A stretch of DNA of 64,000 bases from Selaginella moellendorffii (lineage: Eukaryota > Plantae > Lycopodiophyta): contig NW_003314292.1 of the NCBI RefSeq assembly GCF_000143415.4, positions 861,325 through 925,324 on the forward strand, read 5' to 3'. Below are positions 20,870 to 44,712 of this stretch, in pieces; position 1 is the first letter of the stretch, and the number at the start of each line of letters is the position of its first letter. The notes under the pieces are model-generated. The model ran no database searches, had not been told where the DNA came from, and saw only the letters and a list, made by a program, of their open reading frames with translations. The position numbers and the translations under genes are program-made.

Positions 20870-21240
20870 ATGGATTCTAAAGCACTACAGCTTCTTATCC
20901 TCAGCTTGGTTTCAATTGTCCATTTCCCCAACTGCGGGACTTCTCAGTGCGATCGAGCTCATCTTCTCAAAGAATGCGTCCCGTGTGTGGCATCTGGCAC
21001 TGTTCTTGAGCATCCAGACGTCAATTGTTGCAAAGCAGTGAATGCTCTAGGCCACAACTGCTTGTGTTCACTCATTGTTTCTTCTACTGGTGTTCTTGCC
21101 AAAGAAACAATGAAGAGATATGTAGAGTCCTGTCAAGTAGTGCTCCCAGAGGATTACCAATGTGAGTTCAATGATCAAAGTGTTTGTAGTTACTAAAATT
21201 TATTATGCTATTGTTCTTTGCAGGTGAAGGCATCATGTAA
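20870..21240 (+). CDS. nsLTP/8-cysteine-motif protein, copy 1 (exons 20870-21161, 21224-21240; 102 aa)
   Basis: Signal peptide; C-x8-C-x2-C-x13-CC-x9-CxC-x21-C-x9-C; ends LPEDYQC|EGIM. Confidence 0.85.
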
Positions 21241-21430
21241 TGTAAGTATGGATACATGTAAACTTTCTAGTTATATACGTATTTCTATGCAAGTTGAATT
21301 TTAATTATAAACTTAAGACCATTTGGTTCACTAGATTTTTAGAAAACTTGCACAGAATTAACTTTTGGCTTTTGTATAAATCTCAAAGAAATTCTCAACA
21401 TAAAACATCAATTCATCAATCCATTTTTTA

Positions 21431-22012
21431 ATGGCAACTTCAGTCGTGTTTTGCTTCGTTCTCTGCACCTTTCTGGTTCAAGTCAGTGTGGGTTTGCTTG
21501 TACAATATGGCTCCACCACAGTCGGGAATGGCAACTTCGTCTCATTGAGCAGCACCAGTTCAGCCCCTACAGTTGACATTGAAGGATTTGGGAAGAATGG
21601 CACTACTCGTCTCTTCTCTGTGGTCATGGCAGATCAAAAGGCATTGGTAGCGTCAAATAAAGTTTATCCCTACATCAACTTTTGGATTGCAAACATTCCA
21701 GCCGGCAGCACTGGTAAGTAATATATATTTTGGTTTACAAAACTTTACAAATCATGGTGGCTTGGTACAGGAGCTGTGAAGGACAGCATTTTGGAGCCTT
21801 ATGTATCTCCTTCCAACACCAGCAAGAACATTCCATACCCAAATCCATTCAATGCAAGGAACCACACGTATGATTTCGTGCTTGTACCACAGAGGAATCC
21901 CTTGGTGAAGCCCATGGATAGTCGACTTGTCAACTCACTGGCTGATATCATCCAGCAATACCACTGCGGAAGCCCTCTCCAAACGGTCTCCTTTACGACA
22001 TCACTCCATTGA
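21431..22012 (+). CDS. Secreted divergent PEBP (FT/TFL1/MFT-like fold), copy 1 (exons 21431-21713, 21771-22012; 174 aa)
   Basis: Colinear with FT: LLVQYGSTTVGNG ~ LKVTYGQREVTNG; PTVDIEG ~ PRVEIGG; FSVVMAD ~ YTLVMVD; IANIPA ~ VTDIPA; YVSPS ~ YENPS; HTYDFVL; YHCGSPL ~ YNLGLPV. N-terminal hydrophobic signal. Confidence 0.82.
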
Positions 22013-22734
22013 TGTTATTTTGATATTGATATAAGAGGCATGACTCAATGAGTTGAAAGTACTGAGTGATTCTAGAATTTCCATTTATGGAAAAAGGCCA
22101 TCTTTCTTTCGCGAAGTTTATCCTCATGTCCACGCCAGGAGTGCATTCTATGTGTTGTAATTGTGCAATCTGCGAGTGGATCTCATCGGAAGCTCTGAAC
22201 TGGTTTTGAATATCCGGGCCTTGCTGGAGCTGGACGTCGTTAAGTAGAAGTTTTAGCCCCATGGGCTTTGTTGATCAAATCCACGCCAGGAGTGCATTCC
22301 ATAAACGTCTCTTCTTGTCGAAGAATACATGTGATGCCTTTGATGTAGCCTGCGCTTTCGTTCCAGCTCCGTACCAGACCTGAGAAGAAGAAAGCACAGA
22401 GAATAAGAGCTTAGTTCCAGATCGAAAGGAGAAGCATTACCTTGACCTTGACCTGTTCATACAATTTCGTAAAGTCTATCAGCGTGACTACTCCCAGCCT
22501 CGATGTCAAATCCACAGGGCGAGCTCAGGGATCTCGGCGACCAATGTCCGAGCGAAAGGACGCTCAGCAACCGGGACGAATGATCCGAGATGCACGATCA
22601 TCGAACAAAGAAAGAAAAAACTCAAACTTATGAAACCATAGTTTTCTTGAGCTGGTCCAGTCCCACCACTGCACTCACTGGAGCTCGTGGCGCCTCCTCC
22701 ACCTCACTATTCTCGGTCGATCCAATTGATTCTA

Positions 22735-22996
22735 CAGCGGCCGCATTCTCTTTCCTGGATTGACACTAGAATCCACTCCGCGCTCAAAATTTCCTTTCTA
22801 GCGGGAAATATATGTAGAAGCAAGAACTCTACTTAACAATCCACTAACTTTTAAACGGAAACTTTCTCTTAGCAAAAATCGTTCTTAGTGGGTGGAATGG
22901 AAAAAGAAATTTAGTTTGTCGACTTCCTCCATCTTGCTCCCCTCGGCATCGTTCCCTTCCTCGAGTGGCGGCATCTCAACGTCGGCGGCATCGCCC
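22735..22996 (-). pseudogene. Duplicated 3' end of HSP90 (last ~25 codons including MEEVD plus downstream flank)
   Basis: Matches 28454-28799 (gtcgacttcctccatcttgctcccctcggc...); stop codon context altered. Confidence 0.9.
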
Positions 22997-23372
22997 CAGC
23001 TGGAGACAAGAGAAGACTTGAATATCTATCTATCTGCTGAGCTATGGTCACGAGGGAAGAGCCTTCGATCGTCAATTTTCCTTCGCACTTCGGCCATTTT
23101 TGCTATAATAGGCGAAAGACTATAGGCAAAAGTTGGGTTTGGGCATGCAATGTACAGTTGTTTGACTAAGCAAGTTGTAACAACCTAAGAGAGAGTGACA
23201 AAGGTTCTTATTTCCTACTGGTCCGAGTAAAATATTTCGCTTGTATTTTTAAAATCTTCATATGTGATAAAAGTCCATTACTTTGATTACAATGTAGCTC
23301 GTTTTGTCAAACAATCTCACATGTTTGTATTTGTTATAGGCTTCCTTGCTGCTACCTGTGGAGTTGCCTCTA

Positions 23373-23743
23373 ATGGATTCTAAAGCACTACAGCTTCTTA
23401 TCCTCAGCTTGGTTTCAATTGGCCATTTCCCCAATTGGGGGACTTCTCAGTGCGATCGAGCTCATCTTCTCAAAGAATGCGTCCCGTGTGTGGCATCTGG
23501 CACTGTTCTTGAGCATCCCGACGTCAATTGCTGCAAAGCAGTGAATGTTCTAGGCCACAACTGCTTGTGTTCACTCATTGTTTCTTCTACTGGTGTTCTT
23601 GCCAAAGAAACAATGAAGAGATATGTAGAGTCCTGTCAAGTAGTGCTCCCAGAGGATTACCAATGTAAGTTCTATGATCAAAGTGTTTGTAGTCACTAAA
23701 ATTTGTTATGCTATTGTTCTTTGCAGGTGAAGGCATCATGTAA
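23373..23743 (+). CDS. nsLTP/8CM protein, copy 2
   Basis: Intact near-identical copy of 20870-21240. Confidence 0.85.
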
Positions 23744-23991
23744 GGGAAGTTGTGTATGTATTTATATGCAAATACTTTCTAGTTATATACGTATTTATAT
23801 GCAAGTTTGTTCTTGGTGTTTTCTAATTTCAGCCTATACCATTCTTATTATAAACTTAAGACCATTTGGTTCACTAGAATTTTAGAAAGCTTGCACAATT
23901 TATCAAAGGCATGGACGGAATTAACTATGGCCTTTTGTATAAATCAAAGAAATTCTCAACATAAAACATCAATTCCTCAATCCATTTTTTA

Positions 23992-24573
23992 ATGGCAACT
24001 TCAGTGGTGTTTTGCTTCGTTCTCTGCTCCTTTCTGATTCAAGTTAGTGTGGGTTTGCTTGTACAATATGGCTCCACCACAGTCGGGAATGGCAACTTCG
24101 TCTCATTGAGCAGCACTGATTCTGCCCCTACAGTTGACATTGAAGGCTTTGGGAAGAATGGCACTACTCGTCTCTTCTCGGTGGTCATGGCAGATCAAAA
24201 GGCATTGGTAGCGTCAAATAAAGTTTATCCCTACATCAACTTTTGGATTGCAAACATTCCAGCCGGCAGCACTGGTAAGTAATATATATTTTGGTCTACA
24301 AATCTTTACAAATCATGGTGGCTTGGTACAGGAGCTGTGAAGGGCAGCATTTTGGAGCCTTATGTATCTCCTTCCAACACCAGCAAGAACATTCCATACC
24401 CAAATCCATTCAATGCAAGGAACCACACGTATGATTTCGTGCTTGTACCACAGAGGAATCCCTTGGTGAAGCCCATGGATAGTCGACTTGTCAACTCACT
24501 GGCTGACATCATTCAGCAGTACCACTGTGGAAGCCCTCTCCAAACCGTCTCCTTTACGACATCACTCTATTGA
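23992..24573 (+). CDS. Secreted divergent PEBP-like protein, copy 2
   Basis: Intact two-exon copy. Confidence 0.82.
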
Positions 24574-27121
24574 TGTTATTTTGATATTGATATAAAAGGC
24601 ACGACTCAATGAAATGAAAGATTTTTTTATTAAGACCAATCAAAGAATAGATGCGATCTTTGCTCGTGCGGGTAGACAAGTGTTAGACAACAAGCCCGAG
24701 CTTCCATGTAGCTACCACCAGATTTCTATGTCAGTCTACCGCTCTTAGATTCCACCTTTGGATCGCTGACGAAATTTATCCCCATGGTGCTGCTTTGTTG
24801 ATCACATCCACGCCAGGAGTGCATTCCATAAACGTCTCTTCATGTCGAAGAATACATGTGTGATGCCTTTGATGTACGCATTACAAGCTTTGTCTAGGAA
24901 GAACAGGGACATTGGGTGCTTGTCAGCATAAAGCATAACATCGGCTTCACGTTCAGGATGCTCTTGAAGTATCATGACGAGGAGGCTCTGTTGCAGTTTC
25001 CAAGGTAGTATAAGAATCGTGCTAATATCTGGTTTCGACCATTTAGATGAATTATGTGAGAAATGGAGCTCATTATTCTAGAAGATTTCCATACAACTAG
25101 GACCTTTGGGTTGGGGGTTCGAATCCCCCGAGTGGCGTCTTTGCCTCGTGTTGCATGGCAGCACCTTTTGCAGCTTTGGCATACAGGGGACTGTAGCCTA
25201 CCGACACACGCAACATTCACATTTACTAAATGTACAGATACGTTGTAAGAACGTATTTTCTGCAGGTATGGGGTCCCGAGGTTGACTCTCGGAGCCCTCC
25301 ATTCCAGTCTACGGATGCTCAAGACTAAATACACTACAAGACGAGCTCTCTCGACCATGTTAAACACGAATTTGAACCAACATGAATTGGAACTCTACCC
25401 CTTCTGTGAACAAATGGATATGGCCTTTCACCTTGATCTTGAAGATCCGGGAATTGCTGGAGCAGCACGTCTCGCTGGTGGCACACGGAGTGGTGATCCT
25501 GCTGGAGCTACGTGTACTTCGCGCTGAGCTGCTCAAAGTCGAGCGAGCTCTCGGGAGCCTCGAGCTGCTGAGCTTGCCAAAGATCAAAGAACAAAACTCT
25601 AGAACTTGTTCCAGAAAAATCAAAGAACTACAGGGACGAGATGAGCGCTTCCTTTGGCTGGATCACGGTCTGCTTCCTAGCACGCGTTGTTGGATCTCAG
25701 GGATTCTTCCGGGCTTTCTTCGTGCAGCTCCTTTGAAACTTTGATCCTCTGGAGCCAGACGATTCACCGATGGAAAACTTGGACGGTTGGAAGGCTTTCA
25801 AAGAGATTGCGAGCACACTCGAAACGATCCAGTGGAACTCTGGATCTCACCAACGAGATTGGTCAAGTTCTAAACCTCCAATGCCGCAGCCGCACAGCGA
25901 GCTAAGAGTTCGCCATGTTTAATCTTATTTTGTGTAGGGTGTAGATCCTCCTTTTCGAGGTGGAGCTGCGCTGGATGGCTGCACAGTGAACACGGCATCC
26001 ATATTCGCGGAAGAGCCGATTGTGGAATTGGCTCCTCCCATCCTCTACCCCCCAAGTATTGAAAGATTTGCTGACATCTTCCCAGATCTAAGGATGTTCC
26101 TTCCTTTGGGTATTGATTGACTTGATGGATATAGAATCTCACTCTAGGTACGACTTTGTCAAAGCCATAAAATCCTCAAGCAGCTATGATATTGATTTTG
26201 TTTTGCACACATCTGACATGAGGCTTCAGCGCGCGTTTTTTTTTTCCGAAGCCTTCCTCTAGGGATTGTTTATCACCAAAGAGACCATATCTTCTTCTGT
26301 GTACCTCCACAGCACCCAACCATTTTGAGTTCGCCATTGGAATGCTTGATGGCGAAAATGAGATAGTGCTTAAACACCATTAATGTCTGATCGGCACCTC
26401 AAATACAAGCAAAGACCTCGAGGATCCCACATTACGTTTGCTATACTGTGTTTCGTGCTCCAAAAATCGATCCAACAGTTCAAGAGGTCCAAAGCTATAT
26501 AACTCTGCCAATTTTCTCGTCAAGGCATATAGACATATACATATGTGATCCCAAGGGCGTATGTATACCTTTCTTGCTCCATGATGGAACTATAAGAAAG
26601 GAGAACTTGGCAACAAATGCGTGTACTTTTGGAGACAGCCTCAGGCAAGTGGATAGAAAAGAAATAAGAAAGGTGGCGATGCGCAACCGATGATCATCCC
26701 TTGATTTAGAAACCGTCCGGGCTCTTGTCTGACTAAGGCTCAGTTGTGGCATCTCTTTAAAGCGCGTGAATATATCTTTCTATCTGCTGAGCTATCATCA
26801 CGGGGAAAGAGACTTCGATCGGGAATTTTCCTTTGCACGTCGGCCATGTTTGCTATAATAGGCGAAAGACTATAGGCAAAAGATGGGTTTGGGCAGGCAA
26901 TGTACAGTTGTTCGACTAAGCAAGTTGCAACAAGCTAAGAGAGAGTGACAAGGTTCTTGTTTCTTACTGGTCCTAGTAAAATATTTCTCTTGTATTTTTA
27001 AAATCTTCATATGCGATAAAAGTCCATTACTTTGATCACAATGTAGCTCGTTTTGTCAAACCAACTCACATGTTTTTACTTGTTATAGGCTCGCTTGCTG
27101 CTATCTGTAGAGTTGCTTCTA

Positions 27122-27492
27122 ATGGATTCTAAAGCTCTACAGCTTCTTGTCCTCAGCTTGGTTTCAATTGTCTATTTCCCCAATTGTGGGACTTCTCAGT
27201 GCGATCGAGCTCATCTTCTCAAAGAATGCGTCCCGTGTGTGGCATCTGGCACTGTTCTTGAGCATCCAGACGTCAATTGTTGCAAAGCAGTGAATGTTCT
27301 AGGCCACAATTGCTTGTGTTCACTCATTGTTTCGTCTACTGGTGTTCTTGCCAAAGAAACAATGAAGAGATATGTAGAGTCCTGTCAAGTAGTGCTCCCA
27401 GAGGAGTACCAATGTAAGTTCAATGATCAAAGTGTTTGTAGTCACTAAAATTTGTTATGCTATTGTTCTTTGCAGGTGAAGGCATCATGTAA
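27122..27492 (+). CDS. nsLTP/8CM protein, copy 3
   Basis: Intact near-identical copy. Confidence 0.85.
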
Positions 27493-27716
27493 TATATGTA
27501 TGTATACATATATACTTTCTAGTTATATACGTATTTCTATGCAAGTTGAAATTTCCACCTGTACCATTCTTATTATAAACTAAGACCATTTGGTTCACTA
27601 GATTTTTAGAAAACTTGCACAATTTATCAAAGGCATGGACAAAATTAACTATGGCCTTTTGTATAAATATCAAAACGATTCTCAACATAAAACATCAATT
27701 CATCAATCCATTTTTA

Positions 27717-28298
27717 ATGGCAGCTTCAGTGGTGTTTTGCTTCGTTCTCTGCTCCTTTCTGATTCATGTTAGTGTGGGTTTGCTTGTACAATATGGCTCC
27801 ACCACAGTCGGGAATGGCAACTTCGTCTCATTGAGCAGCACCAGTTCAGCCCCTACAGTTGACATTGAAGGATTTGGGAAGAATGGCACTACTCGTCTCT
27901 TCTCTGTGGTCATGGCAGATCAAAAGGCATTGGTAGCGTCAAATAAAGTTTATCCCTACATCAACTTTTGGATTGCAAACATTCCAGCCGGCAGCACTGG
28001 TAAGTAATATATATTTTGGTTTACAAAACTTTACAAATCATGGTGGCTTGGTACAGGAGCTGTGAAGGACAGCATTTTGGAGCCTTATGTATCTCCTTCC
28101 AACACCAGCAAGAACATTCCATACCCAAATCCATTCAATGCAAGGAACCACACGTATGATTTCGTGCTTGTACCACAGAGGAATCCCTTGGTGAAGCCCA
28201 TGGATAGTCGACTTGTCAACTCACTGGCTGATATCATCCAGCAATACCACTGCGGAAGCCCTCTCCAAACGGTCTCCTTTACGACATCACTCCATTGA
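27717..28298 (+). CDS. Secreted divergent PEBP-like protein, copy 3
   Basis: Intact two-exon copy starting MAASVVFCF. Confidence 0.82.
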
Positions 28299-28718
28299 TG
28301 TTATTTTGATATTGATATAAGAGGCACGACTCAATGAAATGAAAGATTTTTTTCTGAAAACCAATCAAAGAATCGATGCGATCTTTGCTCGTGCGGGTAG
28401 ACTAGTGTTAGATAACAAGCCATGTAGCTACCACCAGAATTCTATGTCAGTCCACCGCGGCCGCATTCTCTTTCCTGGATTGACAAGATTCCACCTTTGG
28501 ATCGCTGCCGGGTAAATTTCCGGGAGACCAAAGAAAATTTGGTCTCCCGCCCAAAATGTTCTTTCTAGCGGGAAATATATGTAGGGCTAAGATTTGAAAA
28601 TATAAACTGGATTGGAGAAATCCACTTAACAATCCATTAACTTTTAAACGAAACCTTTCTCTAAACAAAAATCGTTCTTAGTGGGTGGAATGGAAAAAAA
28701 AAAATTAGCGTGCGTTGT

Positions 28719-31086
28719 TTAGTCGACTTCCTCCATCTTGCTCCCCTCGGCGTCGTTCCCTTCCTCGAGCGGCGGCATCTCAACATCGGCGGCATCGCCA
28801 CTCACATCATCGTCGATGCTCAGCCCCAGCTTGAGCATGCGATGGATCCTGGATCCAAAAGTGTTGGGATCATCCAGGCTGAATCCCGACGTGAGCAGCG
28901 CCGTCTCGAACAGCAGCAGCACCAGATCCTTCACCGCCTTGTCATTCTTGTCCGCGTCCGCCCGCTTCCTCAGCTCCTCCATGATCGTGTTGTCCGGATT
29001 GATCTCCATCGTCTTCTTCGAGCTCATGTAGCTCGACATGGAGCTGTCCCGGAGCGCCTGAGCCTTCATGATCCTCTCCATGTTGGCGGTCCAGCCATAC
29101 TCGCCGGTAACCAGGCAGCACGGCGAATCCACAATCCTGTCCGAGACCACCACCTTCTCAACCTTCTCGCCCAGGATATCCTTCACCACCTTGCACAGCC
29201 CCTCAAACGCCGCCTTCTTCTCCTCGAACTTCTTCTTCTCGTCGTCGGTGTCCTCGAGCTTCAATCCCTCCTTGGTGGCCGAGACGAGCTTCTTGCCATC
29301 GTACTCCTTGAGCTGCCCCACTGCGTACTCGTCGATCGCGTCCACCATATAGAGAACCTCGTACCCCTTGCGCTTGAGCCTCTCCAGGAAGGGAGAGTTC
29401 TCCACCGCCTTCTTGCTTTCGCCGGTGATGTAGAAGATGTCCTTCTGGTTCTCCTTCATCCGGGTCACGTAGTCCTTGAGACTCGTCATCTCGTCGCCGC
29501 TCTTGGTCGAGTGGTAGCGCAGCAAGTCGGCCAGCTTCTGCCGGTTCTGGCTGTCCTCGTGGATCCCCAGCTTGATGTTCTTCGCGAAGGCCTCGTAGAA
29601 CTTGTTGTAGTCCTCCTTGTTCTCTGCGATCTCGGCGAACATCTCCAGGCACTTTTTCACCAGGTTCTTCCGGATCACCTTCAGGATCTTGTTCTGCTGG
29701 AGCATCTCGCGGGAGATGTTGAGCGGCAAGTCGTTCGAGTCCACCACGCCCTTGACGAAGGCCAGGTACTCGGGGATAATCTCCTCGCAGTTGTCCATGA
29801 TGAACACCCGCCTCACGTAGAGCTTGATGTTGTTGAGCTTCTTCCTCGTGTCGAAGAGATCAAAGGGAGCCCTCTTGGGAACGAAGAGGATGGCCCGGAA
29901 CTCTAGCTGCCCCTCCACGGCGAAGTGCTTCACCGCGAGATGGTCCTCCCAGTCGTTGGTCAGGCTCTTGTAGAAGGCCCCATACTCCTCCTTGGTGATC
30001 TCATCGGTCTTCCTCATCCAGATGGGCTTCTGAGTGTTTACGTGGCTCCACTCGTGAGACACCTCCTTCACCGTCTTCTTCTTCTTCTTTTCCTTCTCCT
30101 TCTCTTCATCGACCTCCTCGATCTTCCCCTCCTCGTCATCCTTCTTCTCCTCTTCCTCCTCGTCGTCCGAGATCTCCTTGTCAGTAGTCTTCTCGATCCA
30201 GACGGAGATGGGATAGCTGATAAATTCGGAGTGCTTCTTGATGAGATCCTTGAGCTTCCTCTCTTCAAGGTATTCAAGCTGTGCCAACCAAAATCAGAGT
30301 AACTACTTGTTTCACATCGATGAAATAGAAACGCCTACCTGGTCTTCCTTGAGATAGAGAACAATCTTGGTTCCACGACCCAGCCTCTCAGTGGTATCGC
30401 GAGTCACAGTGAAAGAACCACCGGCCTCAGACTCCCAGATGTACTGCTCGTCATCGTTGTGCTTGGTCGTCACGACAACCTTCTCGGCCACCAGGTACGC
30501 CGAGTAGAACCCAACACCAAACTGACCAATCATCGACACATCGGCGCCGGCAGCCAGAGCCTCCATGAACTCCTTCGTGCCAGACCGGGCGATGGTACCC
30601 AGATTGTTCACGAGATCTAACAAAACAAGCTCGAGTCAGACAAAAATCTAGAAGAAAAGATCTTAGTCTAGAAATCTGGAATTTCTAGAATCTCAAACTC
30701 ACCGGACTTTGTCATCCCGATGCCGCTATCGATGATGCTCAGGGTCTTGCTCGCCTTGTCCGGAACGATGTGGATGAAAAGCTCCGGCTGGCTCTCGAGC
30801 TTGCTCTTGTCAGTCAGCCCTTCGAACCGAATCTTGTCGAGAGCCTGGAAATCGCAGAAAGAACGCAAAGATCGGTGAGAAATCGCAGAAAGAAGGCAAA
30901 GATCGATGAGAATCGCAGTGAAATATCGCCGAACGAGCATCTAACACTCACATCCGAGGCATTGCTGATGAGCTCCCGCAAGAAGATCTCCTTGTTGCTG
31001 TAGAAGGTGTTGATGATGAGACTGAGAAGCTGGTTGATCTCCGCCTGGAAGGCAAAGCGCTCGACATCGCTATCGCTTTCCGCCAT
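28719..31086 (-). CDS. HSP90: Cytosolic heat shock protein 90 (exons 31086-30952, 30844-30703, 30616-30339, 30278-28719)
   Basis: [56 protein letters not shown] and terminal MEEVD. Confidence 0.99.
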
Positions 31087-31770: not shown

Positions 31771-32109
31771 TCAAGGATGCGCTTGGCTTCTCTGGATACA
31801 ATCGAAGTGCCCAGGGAGACGAATTTTACACTTACTGGAGTATGCCTTGATCACTCTATTAGCATTCTTCCCTTTGGTAGCAACCAGCATGCTACACAGG
31901 CAATCCAAGCTGAGGAGCTTGACGGCCTTGCAGCACGATGCGTCTGGGCTGTTCTTCACGGATCCAAACTGGACACAAGGAGCACACGTATCGAAGACTT
32001 GTGCGCGATTACACCTCATGGAATGTGCTCCTGGCGTGGATATGATCAACAAGATCATCACAAGCACCAGGGGGATAAACTTCGCGAAAGAAAGATGGCC
32101 TTTTTCCAT
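31771..32109 (-). CDS. Second nsLTP/8CM paralog (112 aa)
   Basis: Signal MEKGHLSFAKFIPLVLVMILLII; C..C..C..CC..CLC..C..LPGHFDC pattern equivalent to the array LTP; TATA-like ttataag upstream (~32165). Confidence 0.85.
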   Translation of the reverse strand: MEKGHLSFAKFIPLVLVMILLIISTPGAHSMRCNRAQVFDTCAPCVQFGSVKNSPDASCCKAVKLLSLDCLCSMLVATKGKNANRVIKAYSSKCKIRLPGHFDCIQRSQAHP

Positions 32110-32458: not shown

Positions 32459-33040
32459 TCAATAGAGTGAGGTTGTGAAGGAGACGGTTTGAAGAGGGCT
32501 TCCACAATGGTATTGCTGAATGATATCAGCCAGTGAGTTGACAAGTCGACTATCCATGGGCTTCACCAAGGGATTCCTCTGTGGTACAAGCACGAAATCA
32601 TACGTGTGGTTCCTTGCATTGAATGGATTTGGGTATGGAATGTTCTTGCTGGTGTTGGAAGGAGATACATAAGGCTCCAAAATGCTGCCCTTCACAGCTC
32701 CTGTACCAAGCCACCATGATTTGTAAAGTTTTGTAAACCAAAATATATATTACTTACCAGTGCTGCCGGCTGGAATGTTTGCAACCCAAAAGTTGATGTA
32801 GGGGTAAACTTTATTTGACGCTACCAATGCCTTTTGATCTGCCATGACCACCGAGAAGAGACGAGTAGTGCCATTCTTCCCAAATCCTTCAATGTCAACT
32901 GTAGGGGCAGAATCGGTGCTGCTCAATGAGACGAAGTTGCCATTCCCGACTGTGGTGGAACCATATTGTACAAGCAAACCCACACTAACTTGAACCAGAA
33001 AGAAGCAGAGAACGAAGCAAAACACCACTGAAATTGCCAT
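32459..33040 (-). CDS. Secreted divergent PEBP-like protein, copy 4
   Basis: Intact two-exon copy in inverted orientation. Confidence 0.82.
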
Positions 33041-33279
33041 TAAAAAATGGATTGATGGATTGATGTTTTATTTCTTTGATATTTATACAAAAGGCCATAG
33101 TTAATTCCGTCCATGCCTTTGATAAATTGTGCAAGTTTTCTAAAAATCTAGTGAACCAAATGGTCCTAAGTTTATAATAAGAATGGTATAGGTTGAAATT
33201 AGAAAACACCAAGAACAAACTTGCATATAAATATATAACTAGAAAGTATTTGCATATAAATACGTACATAACTTCCTGA

Positions 33280-33619
33280 TGACTTCACCTGCAAAGAACT
33301 AGTGACTACAAACACTTTGATCATTGAACGTACATTGATTATCCTCTGGGAGTACTACTTGACAAGACTCCACATATCTCTTCATTGTTTCTTTTGCAAA
33401 CAAGAGAAGAAACAATGAGTGAACACAAGCGATTGGGGCCTAGAACATTCACTGCTTTGTAACAATTTACGTCTGGATGCTCAAGAACAGTGCCAGATGC
33501 CACACACGGGACGCATTCTTTGAGAAGATGAGCTCGATTGCACTGAGAAGTCCCATAATTGGGGAAATGGCCAATTGAACCAAGCTGAGGACAAGAAGCT
33601 GTAGTGCTTTAGAATCCAT
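33280..33619 (-). pseudogene. nsLTP copy 4, frameshifted
   Basis: 1-bp deletion in signal region (ttggttcaatt vs ttggtttcaatt) and further deletions near 33400 and in the intron. Confidence 0.8.
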
Positions 33620-36600: not shown

Positions 36601-39163
36601 AAGCATTGCATTTATTTGATCCAAAGTTAATGGAGAAGTAAAAACTTTGTGGCATTTAGATGGTTATTATTGTTTTTTATTGTTGTCACTACTCTTTACT
36701 ATCTCAAAATATAGGGTATATGAATTTCCAAAATTGTCCACATGATCATCGATAGTAGCATAAGATTAATAGCTAGCCACTACCTTTCAACATTGAAAGT
36801 TGATTTAATCATTTGTAACATATACACAGCATGGTATGGCATCTAAAAAACTCCATAGTGACTTTGCAGAAAAGTTCAACCTTATTGAAGTGGATATAAA
36901 TGAATTCTAAGGAGAGTGAAGATTCATTTAAAGTAAAAATGTCCATTGTACTAGCGGATTGAGCAACTTTGGAAAAACATCTTTGACAAGGTTGCTATTA
37001 ATATTTTCATCTTATTTATATTGTTATATTTAAAAAATTATTTTTAGAATTATTTTTATATAAAAATTTATTCAGCTTGAAAGCTTTCAATAAGTGGTTT
37101 TACACACATTCAACCATAATGGAATAGAAGGGTGTTCTTGATTGGGGAAGTGATACATATATACAAAGTTTGTATGTTGCATTGTCTTAGACTTAGAAAA
37201 GGAGTTTAACATCTTTGTGGAGTGTCATAACCTCCATAAACTCCATGCTAATAGAAAGTTAATTACTCCTCATTCATCATGGCAATCTAATACAAGTTTC
37301 AAACCAACAGAAAATCATTAATTGATATAAAAATTGTGGCTGACATACTTGTTTCTCACATATTGGTAGCCCTTGAAGCAAACAAGGACATAATGCACTT
37401 GGACATAACAAAGATATTTCCACCAAATGATTTTCCACTCCCATAGGTAATTCAGTTGTCTCACGGACAACTATAGTACTATTGCAGGATTTTTGTTATT
37501 TACATGATAAAGCACAGAAGGATGCTGTGCTAGATGCCATAGGGGAATAAACATGCGAGATTCTACTGAATATTCTCCATTCTAAGATATCAATCCCTAA
37601 AGGAAGCCTTTGGAAAAATAAAAAACACGCAGATGTGTGCAAAACAAAATCAATATCACTGATGCTGCTTGAGAGTTTTGGCTGGCTGGCGTGTTTGACA
37701 GTCGTGAGTGTATTCACCAAGTCAATCAATACCCAAAGGAAGGAGCATCTTTACATTTGGGAAGACGACATGGATAGTTCCAGGAGTGGAGGGATCGGAG
37801 GAACCAGTTCCATATCCAGGCCCAATCGGCTCTAATATGGACGCAGTGTTCACTGTTTAATCCAGCGCCCTCGAAAAGGTGGAGGTAATCACGCAGTACA
37901 CCCTAAATAAAATAAGATTACGTGTTGGCGAACTCTCATTGGGCTTGGACACCGCTCTGGATCGTTTCGAGTGTGCTCGCAATCTCTTTGGAAGCCAACC
38001 GTCCATGTTTGCCATCGGTGAATCGTCCCGCTTCAGAGGATTGACGAAGAAATCCCGGAAGAATCCTTGGGATCCAACAATGCGAGCTAGGAAGCAGACC
38101 GTGATCCAGCAAAAGGAAGTGCTCATCTCGTCCCTATGGCAAGCTCAGCAGCTCAAGGCTCCGGAGCGCTCGCTCGACTTTGAGCAGCTCAGCGCGAAGT
38201 ACACGTAGCTCCAGCTGGATAACCGTGTGCAACCAGCGAGACGTACTGCTCCAGCAATTCCCAGATCTCCAAGATTAAAGTGAAAGGTCATATCCATTTT
38301 ATTACAGAAGGGGTAGAGTTCCAATTCATGTAGATTGTAACCCCTCCAATTCGTGTCTACCATGATGGAGAGAGCTCGTTCATTCTCGTTTCGGGACCCC
38401 ATACCTGCAGAAAATGTGTTCGTACAACGTACTTGTACATTTAGTGAATGTGAATGTTGCTGTGTCGGTAGGCTACAGGCCGCTGTACGCCAAAGTTGCT
38501 CCCATGCAACACGAGGCAAAGACGCCACTGGGGGGATTCGACCCCCGACCCAAAGGGAAGGGATCTTGTATGGCTCTAGGCAAATTGAATTACTTCTAGA
38601 ATAATGAGCTCCATTTCTCTCACATCATTCCGAATGGCTATTTTTTAGAAACCAGATTCCTAATTTGCAACAAACCTTCCTTAGCATGATGCTTCAAGAG
38701 CATCCTCAACGTGAAGTGGATGTTATGCTTTATGCTGACAAGCGCCCAATGTCCCTGTTCTTCCTAGACAAAGCTTGTAAAGCGTACATCAAAGGCATCA
38801 CACATGTATTCTTCGACAAGAGACGTTCACTCCTGGCGTGGATTTGATCAACAAAGCAGCACCATGGAGAAACTTCATGAAAGAAAGATGGCCTAAATGG
38901 AAATTCTACTTAATGACGACCAGCTCCAGCAAGTCCCAGAGATTCAACACCAGTTCAAAGCTTCTGATGAGCTCCACTTGCAGATTGCACAATTACAACA
39001 CATAGAATGCACTCCTGGCGTGGATCTGATCAACAGGATCATCACAAGCAGCACCATGAGGATAAACTTCGCGAAAGAAAGATGGCCTCTTTCCATAAAT
39101 GGAAATTCTAGAATCACTCAATTCATTGAGTCATGCCTCTTAATATCAATAAAAACAATAAGA

Positions 39164-39745
39164 TCAATGGAGTGAGGTCGTGAACGAGACGGTTTGGAGA
39201 GGGCTTCCACAGTGGTATTGCTGGATAATATCAGCCAGTGAGTTGACAAGTCGACTATCCATGGGCTTCACCAAGGGATTCCTCTGTGGTACAAGCACGA
39301 AATCATACGTGTGGTTCCTTGCATTGAATGGATTTGGGTATGGAATGTTCTTGCTGGTGTTGGAAGGAGATACATAAGGCTCCAAAATGCTGCCCTTCAC
39401 AGCTCCTGTACCAAGCCACCATGATTTGTAAAGTTTTGTAAACCAAAATATATATTACTTACCAGTGCTGCCGGCTGGAATGTTTGCAACCCAAAAGTTG
39501 ATGTAGGGGTAAACTTTATTTGACGCTACCAATGCCTTTTGATCTGCCATGACCACCGAGAAGAGACGAGTAGTGCCATTCTTCCCAAATCCTTCAATGT
39601 CAACTGTAGGGGCAGAATCGGTGCTGCTCAATGAGACGAAGTTGCCATTCCCGACTGTGGTGGAACCATATTGTACAAGCAAACCCACACTAACTTGAAC
39701 CAGAAAGAAGCAGAGAACGAAGCAAAACACCACTGAAATTGCCAT
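39164..39745 (-). CDS. Secreted divergent PEBP-like protein, copy 5
   Basis: Intact two-exon copy. Confidence 0.82.
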
Positions 39746-39982: not shown

Positions 39983-40414
39983 TTACATGATGCCTTCACC
40001 TGCAAAGAATAATAGCATAATAAAATTAGTGACTACAAACACTTTGATCATTGAACTTACATTGATAATCTTCTGGGAGCACTACTCCAACACTGCTTGA
40101 TTGAGAAGGAAATATCTAATTGTAATTGTAAATGTATTAGCAAAAACAGTGACTTCCATTTAACATATCTCTTCATTGTTTCTTTTGCAAAAACACCAGT
40201 AGAAGAAGCAATGAGTGAACACAAGCAATTGTGGCCTAGAACATTCACTGCTTTGCAACAATTTACATCTGGATTCTCAAGAACAGTGCCAGATGCCACA
40301 CGGGACGCATTCTTTGAGAAGATGAGCTCGATCACACTAAGAAGTCCTGCAATTGGGGAAATGGCCAATTGAAACCAAGCTGAGGATAAGAAGCTGTAGT
40401 GCTTTAGAATCCAT
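39983..40414 (-). pseudogene. nsLTP copy 5, frameshifted and interrupted
   Basis: 2-bp loss (ccgtgtggca vs ccgtgtgtggca) and a ~75-bp foreign insert at ~40087-40162. Confidence 0.8.
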
Positions 40415-42923
40415 TAGAGGCAACTCCACAGGTAGCAGCAAGGAAGCCTAGTTCTTAGCTAACAAGTAAAGACATGTGAGCTGGTTTGACAGAACGAGCT
40501 ACATTGTGATCAAAGTAATGGACTTGAAGATTTTAAAAATACAAGCGAAATATTTTACTAGAACCAGTAAGAAACAAGAACCTTGTCACTCTCTCTTAGC
40601 TTGTTGCAACTTGCCTAGTCGAAAAACCGTACATTGCCTGCCCAAACCCAGCTTTGCCTATAGTCTTTTGCCTATTATAGCAAACATGGCCGAAGTGCGA
40701 AGGAAAATTGACGATCGAAGTTTCTTTCCCCGTGACCATAGCTCATCAGATAGATAGATATTCACGCGCTTTAAAGAGATGCCACAACGGAGCCTTAGTC
40801 AGACACGGTTTCTAAATCAAGGGATGATCACGATTAAAGGTTTATCGAAACTTCTCCGGTCAAATGAAATCCACGTAACAAGAAACTGCGGACCGCCACC
40901 TTTCTTTTTTCTTTTCTATCCACTTGCCTGAGGCTGTCTCCAAAAGTACACACATTTGTTGCCAAGTTCTCCTTCCTTATAGTTCCATCATGGAGCAAGA
41001 AAGGTATACATACGTTCTTGAGATCACATATGTATACGTCTATACGCCTTGACGAGAAAATAGCTGATCCATATTTGGACCCTTGAACTGTTGGATCGAT
41101 TTTTGGAGCACGAAACACAGTATAGCAAATGTAATGTGGGATCCTCGAGGCCTTTGCTCATATTTGAGGTGCCGAAATCAGACATTGATGGTGTTTAAGC
41201 ACTATCTCATTTTTGCCATCAAGCATTCCAATGGCGAGCTCAAAATGGTTGGGTGCTGTGGAGGTACACAGAAGAAGATATGGTCTCTTTGGTGATAAAC
41301 AATCCCTAGTGAGAAAGTATTTGCATATAAATACATACACACCTGCAAAGATGCAAAACAAAATCAATATCAATCGTGGTGCTTGAGGATTTTATGGCTT
41401 TGACAAAGTCGTACCTAGGGTGAGTTCTATATCCACCAAGTCAATCAAGGAACGGGAAGATGTCAGCAAATCTTTCAATATTTGGGGGATTTTGGGACAT
41501 GGATAGTTCCAGGAGTAGAGATTCCACAATCGGCTCTTGGCCGTGTTCACTGTGCAGCCAGATCCTAAGAATTCAGCGCATCCACCTCGAAAAGGAGGAG
41601 GTGATCGTACGCAGTCCTGTACACCCTAAACAAAATAAGATTAAACAACGTGTTGGCGAACTCTTAGCTCGCTGTGCGGCTGCGATGACCAATCTTGGCG
41701 AGATCCAGAGCTCCGTTTCGAGTGTGCTCGCAATCTCTTTGAAAGTCCAACCGTCCAAGTTTGCCATCGGTGAATCGTCTGGCTCGAGGATCAAAGTTCC
41801 AAAGGAGCTGGACGATGAAAGCCCGGAAGAATCCTTGGGATCTAACAACGCGTGCTAGGAAGCAGATCGTGATTCAGCAAAAGGAAGCGCTCATCTCGTC
41901 CCTGTAGTTCTTTGAATTTTCTGGAACAAGTTCTAGAGTTTGTTCTTTGATTTTTGGCAAGCTCAGCAGCTCGAGGCTCCGGAGAGCCCGCTCGACTTTG
42001 AGCAGCTCAGCGCGAAGTACACGTAGCTCCAGCAGGATCACCACTCCGTGTGCCACCAGCGAGACGTGCTGCTCCAGCAATTCCCGGATCTTCAAGATCA
42101 AGGTGAAAGGTCACAGAAGGGGTAGAGTTCCAATTCATGTCGGTTGTAACCCAATTGATGGAGAGAGCTCGTCTTGTAGTGTATCACCACAAACTTATCC
42201 GTAGACTGGAATGTGGAGGGCGTTCCGAGGCGTTCGTACAACGTATTTGTACATACATTTAGGTTAGGCTACAGTCCCCTCTACGCCAAAGCTGCAAAAA
42301 ATGCTGCCATGCCGCCACTCGGGAGATTCGAACCCCCGACCCAAAGGTCCTAGTTGATGGCCTGTATGGCAAACTAATTACTTCTAGAATAATGAGCCCA
42401 TTTCTCACATCATAGCAACGATTCTTATACTACGTTGGAAACTGCAACAGACCCCCTCCTCGGCATGATGTTTCAAGAGCATCCTGAACGTGAAGTGAAT
42501 GTTATGCTTTATGCTGACAAGGGCCCAATGTCCTTGTTCTTCCTAGACAAAGCTTGTAAAGCATACATCGAAGGCATTACACATGTAATCTTCGACAAGG
42601 GACGTTTATGGAATGCACTCCTGGCGTGGATGTGATCAACAAAGCAGCACCATGGGGATAAACTCCGCGAAATAAAGATGGCCTAAATGGAAGTCTACTT
42701 AACGACTGCAAGTCCCCGATCTTCAAGACCAGTTCAGAGCTTCCCACTCGTAGATTGCGCGATTACAACTCATAGAATGAACTCCTGGCGTGGATGTGAT
42801 CAAGAGGATCATCACAAGCAGCACCATGAGGATAAACTTTGCGAAAAAAAGATGAAGTTCTAGAATCAATAAGTACTTCCAATTCATTGAGTCATGCCTC
42901 TTATATCAATAAAAGCAATAACA

Positions 42924-43342
42924 TCAATAGAGTGAGGTCGTGAACGAGACGGTTTGGAGAGGGCTTCCACAGTGGTACTGCTGGATGATATCAGCCAGTG
43001 AGTTGACAAGTCGACTATCCATGGGCTTCACCAAGGGATTCCTCTGTGGTACAAGCACGAAATCATACGTGTGGTTCCTTGCATTGAATGGATTTGGGTA
43101 TGGAATGTTCTTGCTGGTGTTGGAAGGAGATACATAAGGCTCCAAAATGCTGCCCTTTACAGCTCCTGTACCAAGCCACCATTATCACATTTGTAAACCA
43201 AAACATATAAGTTGAAGTTACCTGTGCTGCCCGCTGGGATGTTTGCAATCCAAAAGTTGATGTAAGGGTAAACCTTGTTTTGTGCTGACAATGCCTTTTG
43301 ATCAGCCATAACCACCGAGAACAAACTAACAGTGCCATTCTC
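42924..43342 (-). pseudogene. 5'-truncated PEBP-like copy 6
   Basis: Starts at NGTVSLFSVVMADQKAL; lacks signal peptide and first ~55 codons; abuts the RMI1 remnant. Confidence 0.8.
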
Positions 43343-43344
43343 AC

Positions 43345-44712
43345 CACACGCTTAAGAAGAGAATATCTCATGTGTGCCTTTGTAGAAAACACCTGGTATC
43401 TCTTGAGAAAAGCTTGACGTTCTATAGCAGCACTTACATCCAACGGGGAGTGTCCGATCATCCTCTCAACCAGCTGCATAATCGGCGACCATTCTTGATT
43501 AAACAGAATTGCTCGTGGTTCACTAGAGCTTCCATTAAAAGGCTTTCATCTTCGAGCTGGTATGCATCCTTGCTCAGAAAACAATTTCTTTTCTTTTCTT
43601 TTATTACCTTAACTCGGCCTGATTGAACTACACCGGACTCCAAAAACCGCCTCTGTAGAACTGCCAGACGTAAAGGGAGGGGACTCCAGGCTGTCTGCGG
43701 CTGAAAAATGGACGTGAAGATCATAAAACTTACTGCGAAGTTTTCTTCTACTCCTGGTTTCCTGATTGGATTGGAGGAAAAGCATACGAATACGCGAAGT
43801 TCCCAGGCCGACAGGTCCGATGCTGTTCTGAAGTGAAGATAACAAGAATTATGCATGGAGAGAAAACTTGAAAGGCCTTCTTTGTGTTTACTTGGTGTTT
43901 GTTCACTGTAGGAATCCGAACCGCGAGAAAAATCTTCTATAGAAACAGGTGCTTGCCTTGAGCCAGAAAATCAAAATAAGCAAACGCAGTCACTGCGCAA
44001 AGTTAGACCTGTATATGGATGATCACGAACAGTCGAAGAAGGTTGCTGCTCATTCCAGGATTGGCTGCAGCGCCATTGTTTTCTTGGAGTTCGGGGCCAG
44101 GCAGCTTGTGTAAGCTGCTCTTCCAAGTAGTACCACGCGGGTGCCTGCAAATATCCTTAACTAGTACTTGAAGAAGAAAACTTTACCTGTTTCCCCGAGG
44201 AGGTTTGTGTACTTTATGTACCACGCTCTGTCGAGCCTCTTCAAGGTCCTCCAAGAACAGTAACAATTTCCGGGACGAGAAGAAACATCCCCCGACATTC
44301 CTTTCGCATTGGAAGAAAAGAAAATTCAAGGCAAAGACTTGTAATACTTTGAGCTGTGGGGTAGGACGATACTCAATGCCAAAAACTCGTTGAGCATCAT
44401 CGGTCATGGATAGCTTCAAGCTTCGACTTCCAATTCCTTCCTGGTAGTGATCCTTGAAAATGTCCACCGCTTCATCTACCTGTGTGCTATGCTTCCATCG
44501 ATGAAAAGCTATAGAAACCTTCCACTTACTTGTAGAACATAAGTGCATCGCCTGGACCTCTGGAGCGTCGGAGGAGCTGCGCGAAGCATTTCTCGGCGCG
44601 AGAGTCTACCGGTAACTGAGACGCTCCGATCTGCTCGCACAGGCAAGAAGAGAGCCACTGCGCCTTAGGCGAGAACCGTAAAACCCTACTATGGTTCTAA
44701 ACATCCCGCCAT
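43345..44712 (-). pseudogene. RMI1: RecQ-mediated genome instability 1 (RMI1) pseudogene
   Basis: AQWLSSCL..AEKCFAQLL, YVLQ|VDEAVDI, SLKLSMTDDAQRVFGIEYRP, EDLEEARQSVVHKVHKPPRGNR, ..AAW, GRVK|..CFL..EDESLLMEALV resemble plant RMI1. Frameshifts and deletions in exon 1 and elsewhere. Confidence 0.75.

Follow-up and report, generated by a model that had tools for sequence, protein, structure and literature searches.

Repeated LTP and PEBP gene neighbors in Selaginella moellendorffii: a probable case of passive co-duplication followed by gene-by-gene retention and loss

A 64,000-nucleotide stretch of the nuclear genome of the spikemoss Selaginella moellendorffii (contig NW_003314292.1, positions 861,325 to 925,324 of the forward strand; hereinafter the window) contains a repeated arrangement in which a gene for a small lipid transfer protein (LTP)-type protein, denoted LTP-A, precedes a gene for a phosphatidylethanolamine-binding protein (PEBP)-like protein. 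This arrangement raises the question whether the two genes form a fixed functional module or are close neighbors that were copied together. The second answer appears to be the probable one, namely passive segmental co-duplication of close neighbors, after which each gene underwent its own birth and death and the PEBP-like gene alone was kept in every unit.

Peptide-motif scans, self-BLAST and tblastn identified five full LTP-A/PEBP units in the window, three on the plus strand (U1 to U3) and two on the minus strand (U4 and U5), with pairwise identities of 88-95% (Table 1). In all five, LTP-A-derived sequence is located 190-250 bp upstream of the PEBP-like gene on the same strand; in U1, the stop codon of the spliced LTP-A (21240) and the PEBP ATG (21431) are 190 bp apart, or 234 bp when counted from the stop codon of the unspliced open reading frame (ORF). 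A previous sequence-only reading of this DNA had placed five units, each with an LTP gene ahead of the PEBP-like gene, in positions 20870-28298. The repeat is real and the joint copying of LTP-A and PEBP in five units is borne out, but this span holds U1 to U3 only, with U4 and U5 located beyond it, and the LTP gene is intact in those first three units only. A sixth copy consists of a truncated PEBP-like gene, upstream of which no LTP-A was found by self-BLAST or tblastn of the window. The spacers are collinear, such that the succession of the U2 PEBP-like gene, spacer and U3 matches, in inverted order, that of copy 6, spacer and U5; the array therefore grew via tandem duplication and one large inverted duplication. 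The plus and minus arms are separated by an HSP90 gene, which lies tail to tail with the U3 PEBP-like gene.

Table 1. Units, genes, pseudogenes and gene fragments of the array (window coordinates)
Feature	Position	Strand	Remarks
U1	20870-22012	+	LTP-A and PEBP both intact
U1 LTP-A, intact	20870..21240	+	exons 20870-21161, 21224-21240; splice read from sequence
U1 PEBP-like, intact	21431..22012	+	exons 21431-21713, 21771-22012; 174 codons; TGTATAAA at 21373
Two LTP-B 5' scraps, kinds a and b, after U1	22087..22408	+	tblastn, alignment
HSP90 3' end scrap, 173 bp, in U1-U2 spacer	22823..22995	.	copy of 28616-28799 (3' end and 3' untranslated region), 87.5% identical
U2	23373-24573	+	LTP-A and PEBP both intact
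U2 LTP-A, intact	23373..23743	+	Cys22 (leader region) replaced by Trp; covered by RefSeq model P0005
U2 PEBP-like, intact	23992..24573	+	tblastn, alignment, translation
LTP-B 5' scrap, kind b, after U2	24763..24860	+	tblastn, alignment
U3	27122-28298	+	LTP-A and PEBP both intact
U3 LTP-A, intact	27122..27492	+	tblastn, alignment, translation
U3 PEBP-like, intact	27717..28298	+	tblastn, alignment, translation
HSP90 gene, several exons	28719..31086	-	PF00183, E 3e-240 (large exon); upstream exon ORFs
LTP-B, sole intact copy in window	31771..32109	-	PF00234 at 24.0 bits (cut-off 21.7)
U4	33619-32459	-	PEBP intact, LTP-A pseudogene
U4 PEBP-like, intact	32459..33040	-	tblastn, alignment, translation
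U4 LTP-A pseudogene	33277..33619	-	1-bp and 5-bp deletions; motif Cys changes CC>CY, C>R; intron deletion; exon-2 stop lost
Two LTP-B 5' scraps, kinds a and b, after U5	38801..39096	-	tblastn, alignment
U5	40414-39164	-	PEBP intact, LTP-A pseudogene
U5 PEBP-like, intact	39164..39745	-	tblastn, alignment, translation
U5 LTP-A pseudogene	39983..40414	-	premature stop at codon 26, 2-bp deletion, 64-bp insertion
Two LTP-B 5' scraps, kinds a and b, after copy 6	42580..42854	-	tblastn, alignment
Copy 6, PEBP truncated at 5' end	42924..43345	-	starts at residue 54 (first 53 codons gone), no leader

The notion of a fixed module does not survive a comparison of the copies: the PEBP-like gene is intact in all five units, LTP-A in three, and a further LTP-type gene, LTP-B, in a single copy. 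Alignment (A1), tblastn and translation show that the lesions of the U4 and U5 LTP-A sequences are each private to one copy; given that the two pseudogenes have no lesion in common, they result from two independent inactivations. The U4 match is divided over several frames in tblastn, and both pseudogenes have lost the eight-cysteine motif (C..C..CC..CxC..C..C), which U1 to U3 retain in full along with one extra cysteine. The ratio of the proportions of non-synonymous (pN) and synonymous (pS) differences between the U4 and U5 LTP-A sequences is 0.79, and constraint on the LTP-A genes of U1 to U3 is weak (6 synonymous vs 7 non-synonymous variable sites, p 0.06). The 64-bp insertion of U5 maps to the 40061-40160 region (A1 columns 402-465).

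Purifying selection on the PEBP-like gene is clear across the five full units. The pairwise pN/pS is 0.19 overall and 0.10 without the leader (pS 0.08); the variable sites comprise 20 synonymous and 11 non-synonymous ones against a neutral expectation of 77% non-synonymous (p 1.2e-6), and in the mature part the counts are 18 and 5 (p 4e-8). Between U4 and U5, the units with decayed LTP-A, the PEBP pN is 0.003 and pS is 0.050. Selection thus would appear to act on the PEBP copies, for either dosage or diversification, with LTP-A being mostly a passenger.

The distribution of the synonymous PEBP differences is uneven: about 160 bp of exon 2 are free of them, whereas the 55 bp at its end contain 12 (U1 21784-22000 and its counterparts). 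U1 and U3 are identical over exon 2, U4 and U5 over exon 1 and not over exon 2, and the intron diverges among the copies by 1.4%. This pattern is a gene-conversion mosaic that overlies the selection signal.

The sequence-only reading had taken 31771-32109 for a single related LTP; instead, this is the only intact LTP-B, which immediately follows the U4 PEBP-like gene in the same orientation and precedes HSP90. It is the third member of a cassette, the ancestral order of which is LTP-A, PEBP, LTP-B. The other LTP-B remnants in the window are scraps that extend from the leader up to the first cysteine; besides those that follow the units and copy 6, one further scrap precedes U1. The scraps of kind a (after U1, U5 and copy 6) have one breakpoint, with identical foreign sequence beyond it, and those of kind b have a second common breakpoint, again with common foreign sequence past it. 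Since breakpoint and foreign sequence are common within each kind, each kind of scrap was made once and then copied along with the unit. Altogether, the edges cut three genes, namely LTP-B at the two common breakpoints, the PEBP-like gene, in exon 1 of which copy 6 ends where the inverted duplication has its outer limit, and HSP90, the 3' end of which was copied into the U1-U2 spacer. Given edges within LTP-B, PEBP and HSP90, the copied segment was not delimited by a two-gene unit. The HSP90 scrap also yields a spurious antisense ORF at 22892-23125.

The following scenario seems probable to us. Ancestrally, one strand would have carried three small genes, all encoding proteins of secretion type, in the order LTP-A, PEBP-like, LTP-B, an arrangement that survives best in U4, adjoining HSP90. 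The array, a young one, would then have arisen, partly in inverted form, through repeated duplications (1.4-3.7 kb) whose edges were blind to gene boundaries; LTP-A and PEBP would have been copied jointly merely through their proximity of about 0.2 kb, while LTP-B would have been cut and moved on as 5' scraps alone. After the copying, the PEBP-like gene was kept and constrained in the five full units, LTP-A was lost independently in two, and LTP-B survived once. Because any duplication of 1.4-3.7 kb necessarily carries along both of two genes that lie 0.2 kb apart, their co-amplification is no evidence of shared function. A PEBP paralog (P0001; EFJ14599.1) is encoded on a third scaffold, where no LTP-A-like protein was detected among the annotated proteins, a hint that members of this PEBP family may exist without an LTP-A-like neighbor. 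The proposal that the two genes constitute a fixed functional pair is not supported; both decay and edges point to the passive co-duplication of neighbors, which the sequence-only reading had itself named in advance as the alternative that would speak against the pair.

Several considerations weigh against this scenario. The argument from the third-scaffold paralog extends to annotated proteins only, and the copy history is blurred through gene conversion. Differential decay excludes a one-to-one unit in cis but is compatible with a partnership in trans, in which three LTP-A genes and a single LTP-B could suffice for the five PEBP-like genes. The LTP-A genes of U1 to U3 still appear to be weakly constrained, as described above. 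Finally, the ninth conserved cysteine of LTP-A and LTP-B, together with one cysteine in the mature PEBP-like protein, is compatible with a covalent pair.

As a gene array, the locus is an ordinary product of birth and death, the PEBP family within it being its unusual part. Tandem and segmental arrays of plant non-specific LTPs (nsLTPs), which evolve by birth and death, are similar in that small genes for eight-cysteine proteins of secreted type are multiplied locally, with intact genes, pseudogenes and fragments occurring together; unlike these arrays, the segment in the window also holds an unrelated PEBP-like gene, and it is the PEBP-like gene rather than the LTP that is kept in every unit. 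Plant metabolic gene clusters, which consist of non-homologous co-functioning genes, resemble the locus in the adjacency of unrelated genes; they are, however, defined by membership in one pathway, by co-expression and by linkage that is conserved or under selection, whereas in the window the retention of members per copy fails. Of two features that mark a functional gene cluster, retention of all members in each copy and edges that respect the unit, the array displays neither. As a module, the arrangement is of little import. It is a clear example of how segmental duplication carries close neighbors with it and of how the copied genes are afterwards retained or lost one by one. With the adjoining LTP dispensable in cis, fewer hypotheses on the role of the PEBP-like protein need to be entertained, PEBP being the selected gene and the LTPs optional candidates; the by-product of interest is the set of five constrained PEBP-like genes, which belong to a branch of the florigen family with an export-type leader and an altered pocket.

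Could LTP-A and the PEBP-like gene be expressed from one read-through or bicistronic transcript, as a single gene-like unit? The common strand and the mere 190-250 bp from stop to ATG would allow this, and we nevertheless consider it highly improbable. The TATA-type box noticed previously ahead of each PEBP ATG is confirmed: every one of the five units has TGTATAAA, at a distance of 47-56 bp from the ATG and about 135 bp beyond the LTP-A stop codon; the U4 and U5 PEBP-like genes are constrained despite the wrecked LTP-A upstream; and RefSeq models LTP-A by itself. A separate promoter of the PEBP-like gene is plausible, although the conservation of TGTATAAA carries little weight because the entire intergenic stretch is young (mean divergence about 5.6%). 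An in-frame LTP-PEBP fusion via read-through splicing was also considered and rejected: the junction between the LTP-A donor and the PEBP exon-2 acceptor reads TGA, so no fusion protein is expected, and the same junction argues against the single transcription unit.

The identities of both genes as read previously, an eight-cysteine LTP-type protein and an FT/TFL1-like PEBP, are upheld. The PEBP-like gene has a single GT..AG intron of phase 1 within a Gly codon (21713/21771), directly after IPAGST. FT genes have three introns vs this one; its position is presumably near the third intron of FT-type genes, going by the exon sizes of the latter, as would be expected if the gene derived from a plant PEBP gene and two introns were lost. 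The two exons were searched and compared separately, with P0001 (174 aa, S. moellendorffii, 'PEBP-like' in UniRef) serving as the full-length proxy for the spliced product. P0001 was the sole relative returned from a set of 5.8 billion proteins, and it is collinear without gaps with window exons 1 and 2, at 71% and 87% identity, respectively; a search of metagenome contigs with P0001 returned no relative. Among solved structures, window exon 1 matches Hd3a (E 0.0048), then FT and TFL1, and P0001 matches Hd3a (E 4.5e-5), FT (3.6e-4) and TFL1 (2.6e-3), with no other significant match. The PF01161 profile was not reached by the window exons at E up to 1 or by P0001 at E up to 10. The ESM Atlas model of P0001 (predicted template modeling score, pTM, 0.77) aligns with a TFL1 cluster over residues 19-174 (template modeling score 0.71), and 30 of the 30 nearest clusters by Atlas features carry PF01161; an AlphaFold2 model of P0001 built without an alignment was too low in confidence for use (pLDDT 39.5).

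PEBPs of the FT/TFL1/MFT type (PF01161; 3AXY, 1WKP, 1WKO) are thus the best and only significant solved relatives of the window proteins, with the same fold predicted for P0001 in the Atlas model and a similar length. The differences are substantial. Instead of the FT N-terminus, there is a hydrophobic leader of 20-odd residues; VMVDPDAP of Hd3a aligns with VMADQKAL, so that the place of the DPDxP motif reads ADQKA; and the place of GxHR, as located by eye, reads NHTY, with His alone retained in what is now an N-glycosylation sequon, preceded by about 9 additional residues. The protein contains three such sequons as sequence motifs and a single cysteine in its mature part, located in YHCGSP (exon 2) and retained in P0001. 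The interpretation as a very diverged FT/TFL1-like PEBP with a putative export-type leader and lost pocket motifs holds at the sequence level; with DPDxP and GxHR gone, lipid binding is not to be assumed. Such an export-type, pocket-altered branch is not described in the plant PEBP surveys searched, and the literature contained nothing relevant on the accessions, on secreted PEBP in Selaginella or on LTP-PEBP pairs. Animal PEBP4 and the arthropod 'conserved secreted' PEBPs, the top ESM Atlas feature matches (0.91), have the PEBP fold preceded by an export signal, as would also be predicted for the window proteins; they belong to a different lineage, whereas the sequences of the spikemoss proteins are closest to those of FT-type PEBPs from plants, so that the leader was probably gained independently of the secreted PEBPs of animals and arthropods.

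The short phase-1 intron of LTP-A divides the codon of the last cysteine. The U1 product, with the predicted C-terminus ...YQCEGIM exactly as in P0002, is identical to this 102-aa RefSeq protein (XP_024537359.1, 1.85-Mb scaffold). LTP-A had no LTP match in the Pfam profile search; its nearest ESM Atlas clusters are LTP families (feature score 0.90), the Atlas holding no LTP-A model, and it aligns with LTP-B at 35% identity (E 2e-24) with all nine cysteines matched. The ninth, C36 in LTP-A, is located three residues N-terminal of the 'PC' cysteine. LTP-B, like LTP-A, carries the eight-cysteine motif and the extra cysteine, and their conserved ninth cysteine sets both apart from nsLTPs, of the two LTP-B alone reaching the Pfam threshold. 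A JGI (Joint Genome Institute) protein from another scaffold, P0006, is 99% identical to LTP-B and matches PF14368 at 27.8 bits (cut-off 22); this model splices out Cys7 and Cys8, and the unspliced LTP-B ORF in the window retains the whole motif. In RefSeq, XP_024537359.1 is named 'tapetum-specific protein A9-like'. Arabidopsis tapetal A9/LTPc proteins are indeed small and of LTP type, and the name of LTP-A refers to them; the name is, however, automatic, and a review of LTPs (PMC5052319, Table 1) lists for S. moellendorffii 19 LTPd, 3 LTPe, 2 LTPf, 12 LTPg, 6 LTPh, 1 unclassified LTP and no LTPc.

The leaders noticed previously on both proteins are supported by hydrophobic N-termini, which are putative export signals; in the LTPs, the first 24 residues include an 11-residue core with a Kyte-Doolittle value of 2.5-3.5, and about 79 aa remain as the mature part. 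Both the LTPs and the PEBP-like protein would accordingly be predicted to be exported. This brings in a partnership in trans, in which the LTPs and the PEBP-like protein, once exported, would act jointly outside the cell by passing on or sequestering a lipid or other ligand, with linkage favored for co-regulation and unequal copy numbers tolerated. The nsLTP and PEBP families both bind lipids; the adjacency on one strand in every unit, the leader-like N-termini and the three sequons of the PEBP-like protein, the odd cysteine counts (nine aligned in the LTPs and one in mature PEBP) and the mild constraint on intact LTP-A all would suit it. Against it stand the two independent LTP-A losses beside constrained PEBP-like genes, the cutting of LTP-B at the duplication edges, the vanished pocket motifs and the existence of P0001 without a detected LTP-A-like partner outside this locus, and we regard such a partnership as unlikely. 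Still less probable is a bolder version, a lycophyte-peculiar extracellular complex, possibly disulfide-linked, of nine-cysteine LTPs with the single-cysteine, predicted-glycosylated, pocket-rewritten PEBP, in which the florigen fold would have come to serve as a partner or receptor for a ligand carried by the LTP, with the linkage of the genes being a reflection of the partnership.

In the published S. moellendorffii assembly, the two haplotypes occupy separate scaffolds, and a word search with LTP-A yielded one cluster of four members on two scaffolds, the window's own and a 2.10-Mb one that is probably the other haplotype; both facts would be in line with copies that are collapsed or misjoined haplotypes rather than true paralogs. 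The copies in the window, however, differ by 5-12%, far above allelic difference, with many private indels, differing spacers and both orientations, and lie within one contiguous sequence without N, which makes an assembly artefact extremely improbable. An Rfam scan of the whole window gave no match.

The five intact PEBP-like genes of the window are all absent from the set of 5.8 billion proteins and thus apparently unannotated by RefSeq and JGI, unlike the LTP-A genes of U1 and U2, both of which are annotated in RefSeq. The RefSeq model of the U2 gene (P0005; 23240-23743) lengthens the protein by 42 aa at its N-terminus, and the leader would thereby be buried.

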